Of a stretch of DNA of 39,820 bases, positions 87 through 39,244 are shown one piece after another; the stretch's first letter is position 1; each line of letters begins with the position of its first letter. The notes under the pieces were generated by a model that did not search any database, was not told the DNA's origin, and saw only the letters and a list, made by a program, of their open reading frames with translations. The position numbers were made by a program, and so were the translations under genes. Source of the DNA: Cyanophora paradoxa CCMP329 (Eukaryota; Plantae; Glaucophyta); NCBI GenBank assembly GCA_004431415.1, contig QPMI01000383.1, positions 1-39,820 on the forward strand, written 5' to 3'.

Positions 87-3000
87 ATGGAGGCCTTCAC
101 GGCGGAGCTCCTGCCGCTGGGAAGATGGAGGCCGCGCGGAGGGGTTCGCGCATCGCCAGTCGCGCTGCACCGTCGTTCGCTAACTCTGCGCCCTCGCAGC
201 CTGAAATTGTTCAAAGACGTCGTCGATGGTCGAGGTCGGTCGCCTCCTACGCCCCGACCATCGCGCATCGCCGTGCTAAGCGCTGCGCCGACAGAGACCG
301 CGGACGCGAAGAAGCGGGCCATCTACGAGCTCGTCCTACAGGCGATGCGTAACGCGATCCCACACGCGAAGGCCGCCGCCTTCCTGGCCGAGCTGAAGGC
401 CGGAATGGATGAGGTGCCCTCGCTCGCCGCACGGTCGAACGCCCACCTACATGACGCCCCGGTTCGACAGGCGCAAGGCAAGGCCTTCGCCTCCGTCCTC
501 GTCGACGTGATCTGGCTTGCATGTGCGCCCCGCAGGCGGCCGTCAGCATAGCTAGGCTGACTCGTGCTTCCGCAGCGGTCGAGGCGGAGCTCATTGAGGA
601 GTACAGGCAGCGGCTGGCTCCGCTCGTGCGGGACCTGATGGTGCGCCTTGCTCGCCGCGGGCGCGGGCGGTCGCCGCGCGTGTGGGTGAGCCCGCCCCGC
701 AGCAGGCGGGCACGGTGAGCGCCCAGATGCTGGTGGAGCGCATTGAGGACGAGAACTTCCTGCATCTCTGCAACGCGATCACCGACGTCAAGCGTCACAA
801 GGAGAAGGCGAGCGCGCCGCGCCCGCGCGCGGCGCGTGCACGACGTGCGACCGTGCGGCGCAGGTGATCAAGACGCGCACGAAGATGCTCTACACGCAGC
901 AGAAGTACAATCTGATGCGCGAGGAGACGGAGGGCTACTCGAAGCTCGTGACGGAGGTGAACCAGGCGGGCCTCACGGCCGCCAACGCCCCGTCGTCCTG
1001 AAGCGCGCCCCCGCCCCGCACCGCCCCGCCCCTCACCCGGCGCTCGCTGCGCGCAGAACGTGCAAAGTCTGATCGGCTACTTCGATCTGGACCGAACCGC
1101 GTGGCCGACATCGTGCTGGATGCGTACGAGGCGAACCTCGCGTGCGCCCCTCCGCCCGCGCTTCGTCCGGCTCCCTCTCGTGGCCGGGCCTCACGCGGCA
1201 CAGCTCGACCGCGTACCCGGTCCTGCTGAAGGCGCTCTGCAAGCGGCGTACTGCCCCACCTCCTCGGCTTCAAGTTCCAGTCGCCGCCGACACCCGCGCC
1301 TCGGGAGGGAGTTGCGTGCCAGCGCCATCGCGCAGTTCTACCAGCGGCAGGCCGCGGCGCGTCGCTGGCCACGGCCACGGGTCCCTTCGTCGGGTCCGAG
1401 GCGCCGGCGGAGGGCGCGGCGGCGGCGGCCCCGCGGCGGCGCCGGCGGGGGCGGCGGGGGCGCCGGCGGCGACGCCGCAGCGGCTGTATCGGCTGGCGGG
1501 GCTCCTGATCCGGCAGACTGGTGACGGTGGACGAGCTGTACCGCACCTGGCGCCGGACGACGCGACGGCGCGGCGCGAGTACGACGAGCTGCACAAGCGC
1601 TCCTCGAGGCGGCCAAGAAGATCGGCTCCGTCAACCTCGCCGCACGCCAACGCCCGGACGGGCCCGACGCCGACAAGGACAAGAAGCCCGACGGAAGAAG
1701 CCGGCGGCGCCGGCCGCGCGGGGGGAGAAGGGCGGCGCGGCGGCGGCGGCGGCGGCGAAGGCGGAGCAACTGGCGAACATGTCGCTGGAGGAGCTGCAGC
1801 GGCGGCGGCGCAGAAGGCCGGGGAGAACCAGAAGCTGGGCTCATCGTGGGCCTCCTGGAGGTCCGCCACTGGTCGGCCGCCGAGGCGCTCTGCGGCGCTG
1901 GCGCACCTGGACCCGCGGCGCACCCGCCCATCCACGCGCCCTCTGCACCATCGTCGCCCACTGCGTGGACCCCATCTACCGCCTCACTCCCCGACCCGCC
2001 TCATCGCCGCCGCCGCCGCGCCCCTCCCGCCCGCCCCTCCCGATGCCCGCCCCGCCGCCCCGGCCCCGGCCGCCCCGGCCCGGCGGCGGCGGCGCGGCGG
2101 AGGCGCTGCCGGAGCTGCCGTGGAGGAGGACGTGAAGCCGGTGTGGCGCTGCAGAACCTGCCCCGCCTCTTCCCCGTGCTCGCGCACCTCGGGCTCTACC
2201 TCCACGCCGACCCCGTCCTCCACGCCAAGATCCCCGCCTCCTCAAGGCCTACGTCGTCAAGTGCGGGAGCGACCCCAAGGCCCAGGAGGAGGTCGAGGGT
2301 GCGCCGCCCCTCTGGCCGCCGCGCGGGCGGCGGGGGCGGGGCCGAGGCCGAGGCGGGGCGGGCAGGGATGGCGGCCGGAGCCTCTTCCCGGCGCTGGCGA
2401 TGGTGAGCGAGGTGCCGTTCGTGGCGTACGAGACGTGGAGGTCGTGCGCTACCTGCCCCACGTCGTCCGCTTCCGCATGTACGGCACCGTCAAGCGCGAG
2501 ATGTACGAGCGCTCGGCGCGGCTCGCCGTCGTGCGCGCCAGGCGATCGTGGAGATGAAGAAGCACCTGCGGCGCATCTCGAAGGAGAAGGAGATCCTCAG
2601 CAGATGGCCCGCAAGGTCGTGAAGGCGACGCTCGCGAACCCGCTGCCGACCCTCGAGGTGGCCCTGGACCAGCTGCAGGCCTACGACAACCTCATCCAGA
2701 TGTTCGTCGACGTCTTCAAGCAGTTCACCCCGCTCCAGTTCGACTGCCTCGGCTGTCCGCGCCCCCCGCCCCCCCGCCCCCCCGCCCGGGCCGGCCTTTC
2801 TCACCGGCGGCGGGGCGCAGACCTGATCGTGGAGCACCTGTGCAAGGACCGGGAGCGGATCAAGCGGGACGGGACGAACACGGCGCTCTGGCTGGCGGGC
2901 TGGCGACCTTCGCGGGCTGCTGTGCCGCAAGTACCCGGCTCGGTGGAGGTGCAGGCGCTGGTGCAGTACGTGATCAACCAGCTCAAGGAGGACAACCACG

Positions 3001-32027: not shown

Positions 32028-33151
32028 ATGGCAACGGCAGCCGCGAAATGTTCAACTTGCGGGGCAGTCGGACCGAGCGTGTGCGAGAACAAGGTCAGCT
32101 GCCCGGCTCAGCTCGAAGCGCTGTATCGATGCTTAGCTCGATGCGCCGCTTAGATGGTTGGCATCGACAAGTACATGAAGCACGTGTTCGTCGGCGCCGG
32201 GCCTCCTGCGTGCGTGGATCTTGTGCGCGTGCGTGTTTGGCCTCTATGGACGGGGCACGCAGTTCCTGGAAGCCGAAGCTGGAGGAAGATGCTGAGATCG
32301 GCTCCTTTCTTTCGGTAAGCGCTCGCGCTGCAGGCGTGCGCGCGCCAAGAGAAGCGTGGTCACTCCAAGCGCAGAAGCTGAAGAAGTCGCTCAAGAGCCG
32401 CGAGCCTCAGCTCGGCGGGAGCGTGAAGATCACGGGGGTGGAGGAGCCCGGCGCTGCGTCCACCCCAGGGCGCCGCGAGGTGCTCCTGTTCCCGGAAGCC
32501 GTCCGGTACAGCGTCGCAGAGGAGGACATCGAGGCGTTCGCGGCCGAGCTGGCGGGGGGCCCCCCGAGCAAGGAGATCCCGCGGCGGCCGCTCCCCACGA
32601 AGAACTTCGTGTTCGTCTGCTGCCACGGCTCGCGGGACCAGCGCTGCGGCGAGCTCGGGCCCGCCCTTCTGAGCGCGCTGCGGAGCAAGGCGGAGGAGCG
32701 GCGGCTCGGGGAGAGCGCCGCTGGCGGCAGGGGGGTCTGCTTGCGGGCGGTCTCCCACGTCGGGGGCCACAAGGTGCGCCGGGCAGTTCTCTTCCCCGTG
32801 CGAGCTCGAGGCGCTGAGCGCCGGGCCCCGCAGTGGGCGGGCAACGCGCTGGTGTACCCCTCGGGCCACTGGCTGGGGCTGCTCCAGCCGGCGCACGCGG
32901 AGGCCGTGCTGGAGTTCGCGGCCTCCGGCGCCACGGAGCTCCCCGCGCAGCTGCGCGGCCTCTGGCGCGGCCGCATGGGCACCTCCGAGGAGGAGCAGAA
33001 GGCCCTGCTCGCCGCCTGGCAGGCCGAGGAGGCCTGCCCCGCCCCCGCCCCCGCCCCCGCCCCCGCCCCCGCCCCAGCCAGCGGCTCCGCAGGGGCGCCC
33101 AAGGGCCTCCGCTCCAGGCTCCGTTCCTTCTTCGAGTCGCTTAGCGGCTGA
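32028..33151 (+). CDS. Sucrase/ferredoxin-like thioredoxin-fold [2Fe-2S] protein (Apd1/Aim32 family)
   Basis: Motifs KYMKHVFV..SWKPKLE, VLLFPE, FVFVCCHGSRDQRCGELGP, VSHVGGHKWAGNALVYP..W.G, LWRGRMG. The C-x8-C...H-x3-H ligand pattern is present. Spliced start ATG at 32028. Confidence 0.9.
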
Positions 33152-35020: not shown

Positions 35021-38000
35021 ATGCAGTCTAGCCAAAGCGGAACCTCTCGCACGCACGATGCCGATGTCGATATGTACGCGAGACAGGCGGTCGAAACCGT
35101 CCGGCAGTTCATCCTCGCGCGCGGGGGAAAGTTGGAAATCGTCCGCGCCCCCTTCGTGCGCGCGCATACCTTCCCCTCGGCCGCTCACCCCGCTCGCTCG
35201 GTCGCAGACTAAGCTCGGCGGCGCACTCGCGAACGCGACGCACCAGATGAAGCAGGCGGTGAAGACGAAGTACGGCGGCCTAAAGCAGTTGTGCGCCCGA
35301 GAGCTTCGCCTGGAGCACGGAGTCGTGTACGTCGATGGAGGCCGAGGCGCCTTCGAGGACCGCAGGCAGCCGCCGGCTCCGCCGCGGCTCGAGGAGGCCG
35401 CCGCGGGGCCGTCGAGCGGGGCCGGGGGTCAGCAGGCGGGCGGGGGCGAGGGCGAGGAGGGCGGGGAGACGCTGGGCTGGACGATCGACCGGACGGGGGA
35501 CTTCGATCGCGCGGAGCTGAGCGACGAGCTGGCGCGGCGCCAGAGCGAGGCCCTCATCTACTCGATCTTCGGGGAGGACGAGGAGGGCGAGGAGGAGGGG
35601 GGCACGGCAGCGGTGCCCGCGGCGCCCGCGGCGTCCCCGTCGCCTCTCGGGGCCGGGGACGCGGGGGCCGCGGACGAGTACGAGGACGCGACGGACGGGG
35701 CGAGCAGCGTAGGGGCCGCCTCCGGGTGCGCCCCCCGCCCCCGCCCCCGCCCCCGCGCTGCTCCGAGCGACCTTCGGCGCGGCAGCGCTGTGGAGATCGT
35801 GGAAGCGGACGAGGGGGAGGAGGAGGAGGAGGAGGCGGGGGAGGCCGAGGCCGAGGCGCGCCCCGCGCTGGCCGGCGCGCGGGGCCGGCCGGCTGACGGG
35901 GCGGCAGGGCGGGGAGGAAGAGCGGGCGCGGGCGATGCTCGCGCGCATCGTCCGCGAGGCCCAGGCGCGCGCCTCGGCCGCGCAGGCCGAAGCCGAGCCG
36001 GAGGCGGAGGCGGAGCCCGGGGCGGAGCCGGAGCCGGAGCCGGAGGCGGAGCCGGAGCCGGAGCCGGAGCCGGAGGCGGAGCCGGAGCCAGAGCTGGAGG
36101 CTGAGGCGGAGCCGGAGGCTGAGGCTGAGGTCAGGGGGGAGGCTGCAGGAGAGGAGGAGGAGCGGCCGCCTGGCGTGGAGGCGGAGGCGCGCGCGGGGCG
36201 GGCGCACGCGGGAGCGGCCGCGGAGGAGGAGGAGGAGGAGGAGGCCCCACCCGGGGCAGTGGTGGAGGAGCGGGCCCCGCCGGCTGTGCAGGCAGCGGCC
36301 CCAGAAGCGGCTGTGGCGGCGGCGGCGGCGGCTGGCCAGAAGCGGAAGGCGGCGGAGGCAGAGGAGGAGGAGGAGGAGAGGGGGCGGGAAGATGCACCGC
36401 AGGCGAAGCGGGCGCGCGGCGAGGCGGGGCGGGGCGGGGCCGGGCCGGGGCCGGGGCCGAGCAGCGTGGCGCGGTGGTCGCCGCCGTCGGCGGCGCGCGA
36501 GGCCGAGCACCCGCGCGCCGGCCCCAGCCGCCACGAGCACGGGCACGGCCACGGGCAGGGCAGGGGCAGGGCCCGCCCAGCCTCACCACCCTCCTAGCCC
36601 GCTTCGGGTGCGCCTCATCCCCCGCCCCGCCCGCCCCGCACCGGCCCTCGAGCGAGGGCGGGCAGGGCGATCGTGGCGTCGGACGCGGCGGCGCGGGCGT
36701 GGCGCCCCGCGGGGCCCCGCCGCGGCCGCCGAGGCGTACGTCACCTCCCTCGCCGCCGCCCTCTCCGTCGTCAACCAGGTGCCCCCGCCCGCGCCCCTCG
36801 GCGCCCTCGGCGCCCTCCTGGCCCGACGCGGCGGCGGCGCCCCCGCAGCTCGTCTCCTCGCCGACGACCGCCGAGGACGTCTTCGCTCTCCTCTTCCGCC
36901 GCCTGCCCCCGGAGGCGAGCGAGGCGGCGCCCGGCAAGGCGCGCGCGAGGCAGCGCCCTGACCGGCGCGGCGCGGGGCGCAGGCGGCGGCGATGCTCGGG
37001 GCGACGGCTGCGCCTGGCTCGAGCGCATCATCCTCAGCGCCGACGGGCGAGCCCCCGCCCGACCTCCCCGGCCCCCGCGTCGAGAGGCCGATCGCCGCGC
37101 AGGGCCTTCGAGGAGTGCCGGACGGGGGACGGGCGGCGCGGCTTCGTGCTCCGCCCGGGGCCCGTCGGCGCGCGCCTCGCCGCCCGCGCCCTTACTGCCC
37201 TCGCGCCCTCCACGTGCGCCCCGCCCCGCCCCGCCCCGCCCCGGCCCCCGCCCCGCCAAGCTGAGGCCGAGCGGCGCAGCGGAGTCGCCCTCCGGCCCTT
37301 CCCCGAGCAGGCAAACACGACCCCTCCGTGCCCCCTCGCCTCGCCTCGCCTTGGCGGGGCGCTCAACCCCGGCGTGTGCAGATGGCGGGGCTGGTGGAGC
37401 GGGCGCGGGAGCTGCAGGGGCGCTCGGGGGCCCTCCTCGCCGCCCCCGAGTCCCTCGAGTCCATCAGGGCCCGCCCCACTCCCCGCTCCCCGCTCCCCGC
37501 CCCCCGCGCCGATCGCCGGCGCCGGCCCCGCAGGAGGGGAACATCTTCGCGCGAGAGGCCTTCTCGCTCCTCGAGGACGCCTGCCGGTGCCCCCCGCCCC
37601 GCCCCCGCCTCCTGCGCTCCCTCCGCCGAGCCCTCGGGGGGCAGGGAGGTGTGCTACCACCGGGGCCCGACGGTGCCGCTGCACGACCTCGGTGCCTACC
37701 TCAAGTGGCTCGTCGCCTCCGGCACCATCTCCCCGCCCCTCCAGGCACGCAGCTTTGCTCTTTGCGGCTGTACCCCCGCAGCGGAAGGAAGACCGCACCC
37801 CCGCAGGGCCGCCTCGACCGCCTCTGGAAGCTCCGCAACACCGCCTCCCACGGCGAGGCCGTCCGTTCCCCCATCCCCCTTACCCCTTGCGGATCCCAAC
37901 CCCGTACCCCCCGCAGGTGCTCCTCCGGGCCGAGATCGGATTCGACGCCATCGCCGTCACGTGCGATCTCCTGCGGTACCCTTCCCCCCCCCCCCCCCCC

Positions 38001-38863
38001 CCCCCCCCCGGCCTCCCTCGAGTCGAGCCGGCAGGGAGGCGTACCCCTCCGCCGACCTCCCGGAGGAGCTGCCCGGCGTGGGGCCGCAGCCGCCGCGCCC
38101 CCCGGCCCCCGCCCCTGAGCTCGGCCTGGTACCCCCCTCTTCCCCCCGGCGCCTCGTCCCGGGCCCGGCTGACCCCGCGCGCGCGGTGCAGCCGGGCCCG
38201 GGCCCCCAGGCCCCCTCCTCCTCCTCCTCCTCCTCGGCGCCCGTGCCGCAGCGGCCCTCGGCCGAGTCCTCCGCCCCCACCAAGAAGCAGAAGAGGAAGC
38301 TGCGGCAGCAGGGGGGGATGGCCCTGCCCGGCCCTCCCCACGCCCACGCCGTGCGCCCCCCCCGCACCCCCCCGTCTTCCGCCTCCGACGCGCCCGCGCA
38401 GGACTACACGCCCCGCCATCAGGCGCGGCCCTGGGCGGGGCACCAGAGCCGCGGCCCCCCGGCCCGGACGCCCCCCGCTCCCCACGCCCCCCCGCCGGCC
38501 CGGACGCCCCCGCGGCGCCCCCGCAGCGCGGGGCCCTACGCGCCGCCGGCAGCGCCGCGGGAGGCGCAGGGCCCTCCCCCCGGGTTCCTGGGCCAGGCGG
38601 GGGCGCCCTTCGGGGCCTTCGGGCAGCACGGGGCGCCCCACTTCCCGCCCCTCGGGGACGCCCTCTTCCAGGGCCAGCTGCAGCTGCAGGCCCCGCCCTT
38701 CTTCCCCGGCCCGCCCGTACCCCCCGCCCACCTCCCCGCCCTCCACCCGCCGGCCCCCGCCCCCAGCCCGGGGCCCCCTCCCCCCGGCCTGGCGCCGCCC
38801 TTCCTCCACGCCCCGGTACTGCCTTCCCCGCTCGCCGTCTCTCCGACCAGCGCCCCCCGCTGA
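35021..38863 (+). CDS. Multidomain protein: N-terminal winged-helix (OST-HTH/LOTUS-like), acidic EP/EA linker, HEPN-like domain with RxxxxH, Pro-rich tail
   Basis: N-terminus AVETVRQFILARGGKLEI-TKLGGALAN..KQAVKTKYGGLKQLC. Spliced 37383-37975 reads ..AREAFSLLEDAC-REVC..LHDLGAYLKWLVASGTISPPLQ-GRLDRLWKLRNTASHGE-VLLRAEIGFDAIAVTCDLL. The gene itself is well supported by splice sites; the domain calls are by motif only. Confidence 0.68.
35988..36130 (+). repeat. Coding hexamer repeat GAGCCG/GAGGCG encoding (EP/EA)n
   Basis: Directly visible; translates as AEAEPEAEAEPGAEPEPEPEAEPEPEPEPE. Confidence 0.9.
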
Positions 38864-39244
38864 TCCTCGCACGTGCACCGCGCCAGTAGCCGGCATCCGC
38901 GGCCGCCGCTGCGCCGCAGGGGCCGGGGGCGCGGCGCTTCCGCAAGTGGTGGCCCCCCGCCTGGCCCTGGGTCGACTGCTTCTCCGGCGGCAACTAGCGC
39001 TGGCGCCGCCCATCCCGCGTCGCGCCGCTGCTGTAAAGGATCGAGCTTGACCGCGAGCGGGATCGCAATTAATTCGCAAGCTGACCACTGAGCCGCCGGG
39101 TCTCCGACGCCGAAAAATGCCCAAACGTGCCCGAAATGGACCCTCCGAAGCTCATTTCCAAATTTCCCACGGGCCCGAATTGGCGAGCATGGCGCGGGGC
39201 TTTCCTCATGATCAACTGCAGAGCGACATGCACGAGCGGCTGGG

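Follow-up and report, generated by a model that had tools for sequence, protein, structure and literature searches.

Gene organisation

The analysed window is a 39,820-nucleotide stretch of contig QPMI01000383.1 from the very GC-rich glaucophyte alga Cyanophora paradoxa. Near the right end of the window, five short exons, designated Ea to Ee, are located on the forward strand at positions 37382–37975. The features of the gene are as follows:

35072..37250, forward strand: upstream coding-like segments identified by a frame scan, with a winged-helix-like start, acidic and EP repeats, and further short exons
37382..37468, forward strand: exon Ea, 29 codons (MAGLVERARELQGRSGALLAAPESLESIR) with an ATG start; helical, and on the N-terminal side of the matched domain; donor AGG/GCCCGC (GC-AG)
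37469..37533, forward strand: intron Ea/Eb, 65 nt, GC...CAG, 65% C
37534..37586, forward strand: exon Eb, EGNIFAREAFSLLEDAC plus a split Arg codon; helix with LLEDAC as the Ex3R acidic motif, putative HEPN helix 2
37587..37644, forward strand: intron Eb/Ec, 58 nt, GT...CAG
37645..37744, forward strand: exon Ec, (R)EVCYHRGPTVPLHDLGAYLKWLVASGTISPPLQ; putative loop, short insert helix (LGAYLKWLVASGTIS), and start of helix 3
37745..37806, forward strand: intron Ec/Ed, 62 nt, GC...CAG
37807..37857, forward strand: exon Ed, GRLDRLWKLRNTASHGE; putative end of helix 3 with LWKLRNTASHGE; R-N-T-A-S-H at 37834–37851
37858..37916, forward strand: intron Ed/Ee, 59 nt, GC...CAG
37917..37975, forward strand: exon Ee, VLLRAEIGFDAIAVTCDLL plus a split Arg codon; putative last amphipathic helix (helix 4), ...DAIAVTCDLL
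37976..38034, forward strand: intron after Ee, 59 nt, GT...CAG
38035..38863, forward strand: downstream exon(s) encoding a Pro/Gly/Phe-rich tail with a KKQKRK basic patch; stop codon at 38861–38863; at least one further intron at about 38130–38191

The base composition of the five exons shows that they belong to a real, intron-rich algal gene. GC3 is 0.89–1.00 and GC2 is 0.37–0.61 in all five, in the proposed frame only, and the values are like those of the cyclophilin gene from the same window, which was used as a control (GC1/2/3 of 0.60/0.43/0.94). Exon Ea has GC1/2/3 of 0.79/0.55/1.00 in the proposed frame only and is also recovered by the frame scan; GC3 is 0.94 in Eb, 0.97 in Ec, and 0.89 in Ee. 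The GC3 of Ed is 1.00 in the proposed frame and 0.69 and 0.50 in the other two. A blind scan of codon-position composition recovered each exon in its own frame, with a switch of frame at each proposed intron; across intron 37469..37533 the frame goes from coordinate mod 3 = 2 to 1. The five introns are C-rich and 58–65 nt long; three have a GC donor, the other two have GT, and CAG closes every one of them. The introns of the cyclophilin gene are likewise roughly 60 nt long.

The exons, frames, and peptides quoted in an earlier note on this DNA are all present in the sequence, and R-N-T-A-S-H is encoded exactly at 37834–37851, where the note had placed it. Codon-position composition also backs the frame of exon 37807–37857, on which the note had made its proposal depend. 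The start, given there as 37383, has to be moved by one nucleotide, as the ATG occupies positions 37382–37384. This ATG is directly preceded by the acceptor-like sequence tgtgcag, and Ea may therefore be an internal exon.

The segments at 35072..37250 probably belong to the same gene as exons Ea–Ee, with a presumed continuity into Ea. They gave no family matches in Pfam and no matches in the PDB, and a LOTUS/OST-HTH identity considered for the upstream exons was unsupported in Pfam, the PDB, and the ESM Atlas. The idea that Ea and the upstream exons hold another, degenerate copy of HEPN was likewise rejected, its score of 14 bits being at background level. Exon Ea is not colinear with the DUF4145 profiles described below, and its 14 bits to the helix-3 region are at background level. 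The tail encoded at 38035..38863 is probably disordered and has no similarity to the DUF4145 profiles. Within the same segment, ARAGORN calls a tRNA-Cys at 38516–38608, to which Rfam gives no support.

Database searches

Pfam searches gave no match for three stop-free frames or for single exons, and PADLOC and NCBIfam, searched exon by exon, gave none either. No single exon or single frame produced a match to DUF4145 (PF13643) at its gathering cut-off of 23.1 bits. Word-index protein searches with Ec (proteins of 281–894 aa), Ee (535–1703 aa), and Ea together with Ec (88–280 aa) yielded nothing or noise, as did tblastn against plasmids and phages, a search of the ESM Atlas, and a search for contigs that encode a genomic ORF. 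An exhaustive search of cluster representatives with 37382–37744 returned three matches, all of low complexity. Searches of metagenomes, genomes, and viral contigs for related loci provided no homologue; one viral-contig match (L001) was discarded, since it fits the seeded pattern in a frame that is non-coding. The direct searches, run exon by exon, revealed no eukaryotic relative. The partner domains of Ire1/RNase L, Las1, Swt1, and sacsin (kinase; Las1 region; PIN; HATPase repeats and J) were represented by no Pfam family in the stop-free frames and exons of 35058–39047, short exons being a limit on the sharpness of such scans. These blank scans of exon pieces are what bears on the earlier note's proposal of an architecture unlike those four. 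Since the direct searches were blank, the exons were scored one by one against profiles of natural DUF4145 proteins.

Exon-wise similarity to DUF4145

The profiles were built from natural proteins verified as PF13643 by Pfam, each exon was scored separately, and the tests were devised once the sequence had been seen. The alignment contains 33 members. Twenty-nine of them were fetched with a pattern that fixed R, L, G, N, A, A, and H, and the remaining four form the RN-type subfamily: L183 and L231 from IMG/VR, L412 from Salmonella enterica subsp. arizonae (NZ_VXJW01000007.1), and L413 from Chryseobacterium (CACSKA010000007.1). This bacterial and phage subfamily carries the canonical RN..(A/S)H motif.

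Four exons, Eb to Ee, are colinear over the domain with verified DUF4145 members. On the 29-member profile, the best diagonals are -12 for Eb and -18 for each of Ec, Ed, and Ee. When the register was anchored on Ed, Eb, Ec, and Ee together gave p<1e-4 (tolerance 0) to 0.004 against nulls made of shuffles and real phage proteins. On the RN-type profile, Eb, Ec, and Ed share diagonal -17, which is a single gapless register, and Ee lies at -14, three residues off. The anchored sum of the non-motif exons on this profile is 31.5–38 bits (z ~8), and was reached by 0 of 20,000 replicates in each of two null sets. The p-values of the anchored tests overall range from <5e-5 to 0.004.

The homology to DUF4145 can be observed at the level of exons. 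Exon Ec scores 19.8 bits ungapped against the RN-type profile, a value reached by none of 3000 shuffles and one of 3000 real 33-mers. BLASTP aligns Ec to residues 114–131 of L183 (39% identity, E 5e-4), and hhalign puts it in the same register. Exon Ed scores 20.1 bits against the RN-type profile, shares 9 of its 17 residues with L412/L413, and matches L183 in BLASTP (E 0.005) in a register contiguous with the Ec match; in hhalign it aligns to columns 67–79 of DUF4145 alignment A1 (P 7.8e-4). In Eb, EAFSLLEDAC falls on ESWLLIEEAA of the RN-type profile with 10.2 bits, in the register common with Ec and Ed, and SLLEDAC falls on RVLEAIC of the 29-sequence profile. In Ee, DAIAVTCDLL falls on EAIEVTEELL of the 29-sequence profile, also with 10.2 bits, and its best diagonal is exactly contiguous with that of Ed. 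Neither Eb nor Ee is significant alone, and hhalign found no match with either of them on its own. Across Eb–Ec–Ed, the alga and L412 agree in 20 of 67 residues without a gap. As a control, the motif was scored together with its unspliced flanks and reached only 11–12 bits; the similarity to DUF4145 needs the spliced exons.

According to modelling, the RN-type subfamily matches solved HEPN structures, and in the AlphaFold model of L412 the helix of residues 141–158 is immediately followed by the His. The nearest bacterial relatives give sub-threshold matches to HEPN_Swt1, with 21–22 bits against a cut-off of 27.5. The colinear exon match, the null statistics, and the HEPN-structure match of the subfamily model together support assigning the algal domain, very probably, to the DUF4145 type of HEPN, and the DUF4145-like HEPN domain postulated by the earlier note is borne out.

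Motif and putative catalytic residues

HEPN domains have an Rx4-6H motif with Asn, Asp, or His right after the Arg and a second conserved acid upstream, typically within Ex3[KR] (PMC3710099). The algal R-N-T-A-S-H has this spacing, with a polar residue after the Arg, and LLEDAC with the split Arg forms E-x3-R in Eb, in the putative helix 2. DUF4145 members have a conserved LE..C / LLIEE helix, and the acidic helix of Eb falls on it. The window, with 79,636 codons in its six frames, contains the bare motif hxxhR[NDH]xxxH three times, one of them in a THO2-like exon.

The residues invariant in the 33 aligned members are an Arg at -8 from the His, the Asn, the Ala, the His, two Leu of the insert helix, and an N-terminal Arg. 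The -8 Arg was required by the fetch pattern in 29 of the 33, and the four RN-type members kept it unrequired. The algal domain keeps the Asn, Ala, His, and both Leu, has Trp in place of the -8 Arg, and has Asn or Phe, depending on the register, in the column of the N-terminal Arg; it thus deviates from the full invariant set of DUF4145. It carries an Arg at -5, as the RN-type subfamily does. The earlier note inferred a catalytically intact domain, which must be regarded as doubtful. The canonical Rx4H is present, its Arg is followed by Asn, and Ex3R lies upstream, but the Trp at -8 and the loss of the second invariant Arg column speak against it.

Alternative interpretations

An erroneous splice model or an unexpressed locus, which would leave the domain existing only on paper, is scarcely likely at all. 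GC3 periodicity shifts frame exactly at each intron, the introns match those of the neighbouring cyclophilin gene in size and composition, and the DUF4145 similarity disappears with read-through flanks; against this stand the GC donors of three of the five introns, and the searches of the 88–1703 aa range and of the cluster representatives, from which neither a transcript nor an annotated protein or orthologue containing these exons emerged. Very unlikely, too, is that HEPN should give way to a short helical module, armadillo/HEAT-like or of another kind, in which LWKLRNTAS would be the signature of ARM helix 3 and the His accidental. A phmmer search of the PDB with Ed matches only designed armadillo proteins (LWKLRNIASGGN), and chance alone makes the bare motif common. 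Summing over 5–6 repeats produces the whole-sequence E of 1.5e-5; the best single stretch has 8.2 bits. However, only Ed resembles ARM helix 3, there is no ARM match from Eb, Ec, or Ee, and no series of matching tandem repeats, as in an armadillo protein, is seen. At most ~2.5 repeats (about 42 residues, H1-H2-H3) would fit before the Pro-rich tail, and a gapless colinear DUF4145 match over three to four exons is not expected of an ARM repeat.

A real, if somewhat doubtful, possibility is that the domain is a DUF4145-type HEPN but a dead enzyme. It would then bind RNA or mediate dimerisation within a scaffold protein, in the way suggested for Swt1, whose HEPN dyad is inactive. Activity may be lost because both the -8 Arg and the N-terminal Arg, invariant in the 33 members, are replaced, and R146 of the E. 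coli protein RAZR, which corresponds to the -8 Arg, is essential for defence (PMC13017515). Inactive eukaryotic HEPN domains have been described (PMC3710099), and the algal domain lies within a long low-complexity protein. Nevertheless, the His, the Asn, the Arg at -5, and the upstream Glu, which constitute the canonical HEPN catalytic set, are all kept. The nearest subfamily also has an Arg at -5, and decay should have affected the His or the Asn just as easily as the Arg.

Proposed origin and function

Exons 37534–37975 may encode a DUF4145-type HEPN domain that was acquired from a bacterial or phage-satellite gene and works as a HEPN RNase, a reading that we regard as plausible, if just short of probable. 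The nearest relatives appear to be small bacterial and phage-satellite proteins with the canonical RN..(A/S)H, and the RN-type genes follow the D5-type primase in an integrase-AlpA element within prophage DNA. A defence or toxin gene of this kind would most likely be the source of the domain, which would afterwards have been incorporated into a long eukaryotic protein that is largely disordered. The algal protein's own fold, dimerisation, RNase activity, substrate, and biological role are inferred; two HEPN domains would pair to form a composite, metal-independent active site from the His (37849–37851), the Arg-Asn (37834–37839), and the upstream Glu of LLEDAC-R. Single-stranded RNA would be cleaved, leaving a 2',3'-cyclic phosphate.

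A more specific version, which we consider unlikely, is that a glaucophyte captured a bacterial or phage-satellite abortive-infection DUF4145 toxin domain, which gained five introns and was placed in a large condensate-type protein for antiviral or RNA-surveillance cleavage, its catalytic Arg having moved from -8 to -5. A DUF4145 defence RNase would then be in use in a eukaryote. The parts of this condensate-type protein, put forward with the same low expectation, would be a winged-helix or LOTUS-like head, an acidic linker, a Pro/Phe/Gly tail, and a basic patch.

This spliced glaucophyte copy, native in composition, would give DUF4145 a eukaryotic branch, and would be one more instance of a eukaryote adopting a prokaryotic defence nuclease domain. 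The Arg shift, with Trp at the family position -8 and Arg at the canonical -5, would be a natural test of which Arg counts in this HEPN branch. Domains split into exons of 17–33 residues in GC-rich algae evade ordinary family scans, as this case shows, but exon-wise register tests can recover them.

Comparison with known HEPN systems

The table of the 2013 survey lists DUF4145 in bacteria, archaea, and dsDNA viruses only (PMC3710099). The eukaryotic HEPN proteins Ire1/RNase L (KEN), Las1, Swt1, C6orf70, and DZIP3 (PMC3710099) have the superfamily and motif type in common with the algal domain, whereas Pfam searches with exon pieces of the algal gene detected neither kinase, PIN, and Las1 nor any other partner domain. 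Canonical HEPN toxins (HepT/MNT-HEPN, e.g. 5yep and 7ae6) and the sacsin HEPN (3o10) have no detected sequence-level relation to the algal domain. In contrast to HepT/MNT-HEPN, the algal gene is without an MNT partner gene and lies in a eukaryotic context.

RAZR (PD-T7-4) is a characterised DUF4145 member from E. coli, an anti-phage RNase with a zinc finger that cleaves single-stranded RNA (PMC13017515). The His of its GN.AAH is essential, its R146 and H154 form Rx7H, and the protein, which bears a zinc ribbon at its N-terminus, responds to phage ring proteins as activators (PMC13017515). RAZR is of PF13643, a divergent HEPN, to which the algal domain very probably belongs as well. RAZR differs in its zinc ribbon, its Rx7H, and a Gly where the alga has Arg, and searches of the PDB with single exons gave no direct similarity to it.

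The RN-type DUF4145 proteins have about 190 residues, a hydrophobic N-terminus, and no introns, whereas the algal domain is embedded in a long, multi-exon, low-complexity protein. They retain the Arg at -8, where the alga has Trp. Nevertheless, they are gapless and colinear with the alga over Eb–Ec–Ed at ~30% identity, and have in common with it WLV...G.I...L..L..KLRN.(A/S)SH with the same spacing, the Arg at -5, and the upstream acidic LLxEE helix.

Gene model and coding frames

Translation of 37300–38420 in three frames recovered the peptides of the earlier note and its RNTASH motif at 37834–37851, within exon Ed; the ATG that the note put at 37383 is located at 37382.

Exons read from 37300–38420 in three frames, and the continuation from three-frame reading
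37382–37468, + strand, exon Ea
37534–37586, + strand, exon Eb
37645–37744, + strand, exon Ec
37807–37857, + strand, exon Ed
37917–37975, + strand, exon Ee
stop at 38861–38863, + strand, Pro-rich continuation past Ee

The five introns have lengths of 65, 58, 62, 59, and 59 nt and a C content of 39–66%. Their donors are, in order, GCCCGC, GTGCCC, GCACGC, GCCGTC, and GTACCC, and every 3' end is CAG. Introns of equal size occur in a cyclophilin gene 6 kb upstream of the HEPN exons. The G+C content of the window is 59–85%, and each exon combines a GC3 of 0.89–1.00 with a GC2 of 0.37–0.61 in the proposed frame alone; the pooled cyclophilin exons, used as a control, have GC1/2/3 values of 0.60/0.43/0.94. 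For the composition counts, exon bases and intron bases were pooled once, for counting alone. The earlier note had considered that Ed might be read in another frame, but its GC3 is 1.00 in the proposed frame versus 0.69 and 0.50 in the other two. A blind scan for the largest GC3–GC2 contrast finds Ea–Ef in the proposed frames, with a frame change at every proposed intron. Translation and codon-position composition thus confirm the exons, frames, and motif described previously. Since the scan shows further coding-like segments on the + strand, from 35085 to 38711, the gene is probably long and Ea is probably an internal exon, as is also suggested by the acceptor-like tgtgcag directly before its ATG.

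Similarity of the exons to the DUF4145 family

HEPN domains are defined by an Rx4-6H motif that closes helix 3 and has a polar residue after the Arg, by an acidic residue upstream in helix 2, often within Ex3[KR], and by an insert separating the two helices (PMC3710099). The bare motif is weak evidence, as the six frames of the window contain hxxhR[NDH]xxxH at three sites, one of them in a THO2-like exon at 336–368. The latter peptide, LQAMRNAIPHA (+ strand), belongs to a THO complex subunit 2-like gene within about 200–1300 (+ strand), recognised by eye from its peptides; it is a chance hxxhRNxxxH in a presumably non-HEPN protein, which shows that the bare motif is unspecific.

Neither a transcript nor an annotated protein for the gene was found in word-index searches (proteins of 88–1703 aa) or in an exhaustive search of representatives. 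Family scans with Pfam (frames and single exons), PADLOC, and NCBIfam were blank or noise, and Atlas searches with exon pieces, tblastn against plasmids and phages, and scans of sequence collections returned nothing or noise. These results say little, because pieces of 17–33 residues are expected to fail. A search of the PDB using phmmer with Ed matched designed armadillo proteins exclusively (LWKLRNIASGGN), and Ed could instead be an armadillo-like stretch. However, the low E-value is produced by adding up five or six repeats of one 8-bit match, and Ec, Eb, and Ee, each searched alone, have no armadillo match.

The algal protein was compared with the HEPN-type family DUF4145 (PF13643) as single exons, by window coordinates and arithmetic on ordinal positions. 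Family members were obtained by scanning viral contigs for R..LGN.AAH, written as degenerate DNA patterns, and the 29 retained ORFs, each Pfam-confirmed as PF13643 (E 2e-6 to 1e-20), were used to build a profile. Exons were scored one at a time along ungapped diagonals, each defined as the position in the profile less the ordinal number of the residue. Eb scores best on diagonal -12, and Ec, Ed, and Ee on -18, so that the last three lie in a single gapless register preceded by a six-residue loop difference. When shuffled, Ec fell on the diagonal needed in 0.7% of trials and Ee in 1.0%. The Ed-anchored sum of the other three exons was exceeded by none of 10,000 shuffled sets at tolerance 0, by 0.1–0.3% at tolerances 1–6, and by 0.005% to 0.4% of triplets cut with the spacing of the exons from real phage proteins lacking DUF4145 (n = 843). 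With the initial 19 sequences the signal had been weaker, and it became stronger with the larger set. The program hhalign placed Ed on columns 67–79 (P 7.8e-4), and its placement of Ec agrees with that register; Eb alone and Ee alone gave no match.

RN-type relatives

Searching for [L/F]RN.AAH, with the DUF4145 profile as a filter, identified L183 and L231, two IMG/VR sequences that Pfam assigns to DUF4145 at 29–30 bits versus a cut-off of 23.1, with sub-threshold HEPN_Swt1 matches; natural members of the family with the canonical RN motif therefore exist. Their relatives include L412 in Salmonella enterica subsp. arizonae and L413 in Chryseobacterium. BLASTP against L183 aligned Ec 6–23 with residues 114–131 (39% identity, E 5e-4) and, contiguously, Ed 3–15 with residues 144–156 (E 0.005).

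On a profile of these four sequences, Eb, Ec, and Ed fall on a common diagonal, -17, from which Ee deviates by 3 residues, with scores of 10.2, 19.8, 20.1, and 8.0 bits for Eb, Ec, Ed, and Ee. The Ed-anchored sum of the other exons is 31.5–38 bits (null means 8–16, SD 2.6–2.8, z about 8), and was reached by none of 20,000 replicates in either null set. Ec alone scores above 3000 of 3000 shuffles and all but 1 of 3000 real 33-mers. Identities to L412 in the fixed register are 4/17, 7/33, and 9/17 for Eb, Ec, and Ed. Other R[NDH]xxxH sites in the window score 9–23 bits, and for the motif at 37834 the score is 11–12 bits when its flanks are read through without splicing. The similarity is thus confined to the exons as spliced, a result in favour of both the homology and the splice model.

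The register tests were designed with the sequence already seen, and the earlier choice of the site was also made partly from the Ec pattern. We do not think that this alters the verdict, given the wide margin obtained with the RN subfamily. The colinear exon-wise matches support the HEPN reading of the earlier note, and the algal domain is very probably of the DUF4145 type. We regard it as a new member of a known family, eukaryotic and split by introns, in which the Arg is unusually placed.

Positions 37385–37435 (+ strand) of Ea, AGLVERARELQGRSGAL, align with AKLVEKMRKLRNEAAHL, the region of helix 3 in the RN-type profile, at 14 bits. This score is no higher than background, in which about 2 such segments occur per 1000 codons, but the segment could be what is left of a duplicated helix.

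Fold and genomic setting of the relatives

L412 was modeled as a stand-in for the algal protein, using AlphaFold with a 33-sequence alignment. The model has a pLDDT of 62–85 across the domain and contains helices 95–115, 126–135, 141–158, and 167–185, with the motif His right after helix 141–158.

L183-type genes are located directly 3' of a D5-type primase in an integrase–AlpA element inserted in prophage DNA. We infer that the element is a phage satellite and that the position of the gene fits a defence or toxin cargo gene. In the natural sequences L414–L417, an RN-type gene identical to L183 (8001–8576) follows a D5_N/Pox_D5 primase in an integrase–AlpA–HicB element between phage portal/protease and capsid genes, an arrangement that recurs in several assemblies. 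DUF4145 is N-terminal in proteins of roughly 900–1100 residues: in L153, a domain scan places AAA_30/UvrD-like/PIF1-type helicase domains after it and a TBP-TOTE domain at the C-terminus, and L152, L162, L163, and L167 are presumably similar, judged by length and a weak DUF4145 match alone.

Architecture of the algal gene and its neighbours

Scans of exon pieces, which are weak, gave no family matches for the upstream exons (35072 onward) or the Pro/Gly/Phe-rich KKQKRK tail, and did not reveal a kinase, PIN, or Las1 region in the gene. A long acidic, low-complexity coding-like stretch with AEPEPE repeats and poly-Glu (35950–36400, + strand) separates the HEPN exons from a winged-helix-like start at 35072. 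In the tail, TKKQKRKLRQQ (38265–38330, + strand) is a basic patch that resembles a nuclear localisation signal. ARAGORN calls a 93-nt tRNA-Cys within the Pro-rich coding tail (38516–38608, + strand); in this GC-rich sequence the call is probably wrong, because a search of the whole window with Rfam yielded neither a tRNA nor any other RNA family. The gene at 32048–33151 (+ strand), recognised by eye as sucrase/ferredoxin-like (thioredoxin-like 2Fe-2S), has a 60-nt intron in frame, and its genomic ORF therefore runs through the intron. The parts of the literature consulted that name HEPN together with OST-HTH or LOTUS describe no such fusion; for Tiamat, LOTUS joined to other nucleases has been described in aquatic eukaryotes.

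Catalytic residues and comparison with known RNases

All 33 natural members have in common an N-terminal Arg, a Leu in the insert helix, an Arg eight residues before the motif His (-8), and the Asn, Ala, and His of the motif, although for 29 of them R, L, G, N, A, A, and H were already set by the pattern used to fetch them; the four RN-type members keep the -8 Arg even though they were picked without requiring it. Of these, the algal domain retains the Leu, Asn, Ala (followed by Ser, as in L412 and L413), and His; it also has the acidic LLED helix. With regard to the earlier description "CATALYTICALLY intact", the canonical triad R–N...H plus Glu is complete, but the family-invariant arginines are replaced, with Trp in the -8 column and Asn or Phe in the N-terminal one.

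Judged from these residues, RNase activity of the algal domain would have about even chances if the homology is accepted, and overall slightly less than that. Activity is not to be assumed, because the -8 Arg (R146) is essential in RAZR, a DUF4145 RNase of E. coli that also requires H154 (PMC13017515), whereas the algal domain has Trp in this column. Neither is it to be dismissed, because the canonical residues are all present, and in having its Arg at -5 the algal domain is like the RN subfamily and canonical HEPN RNases.
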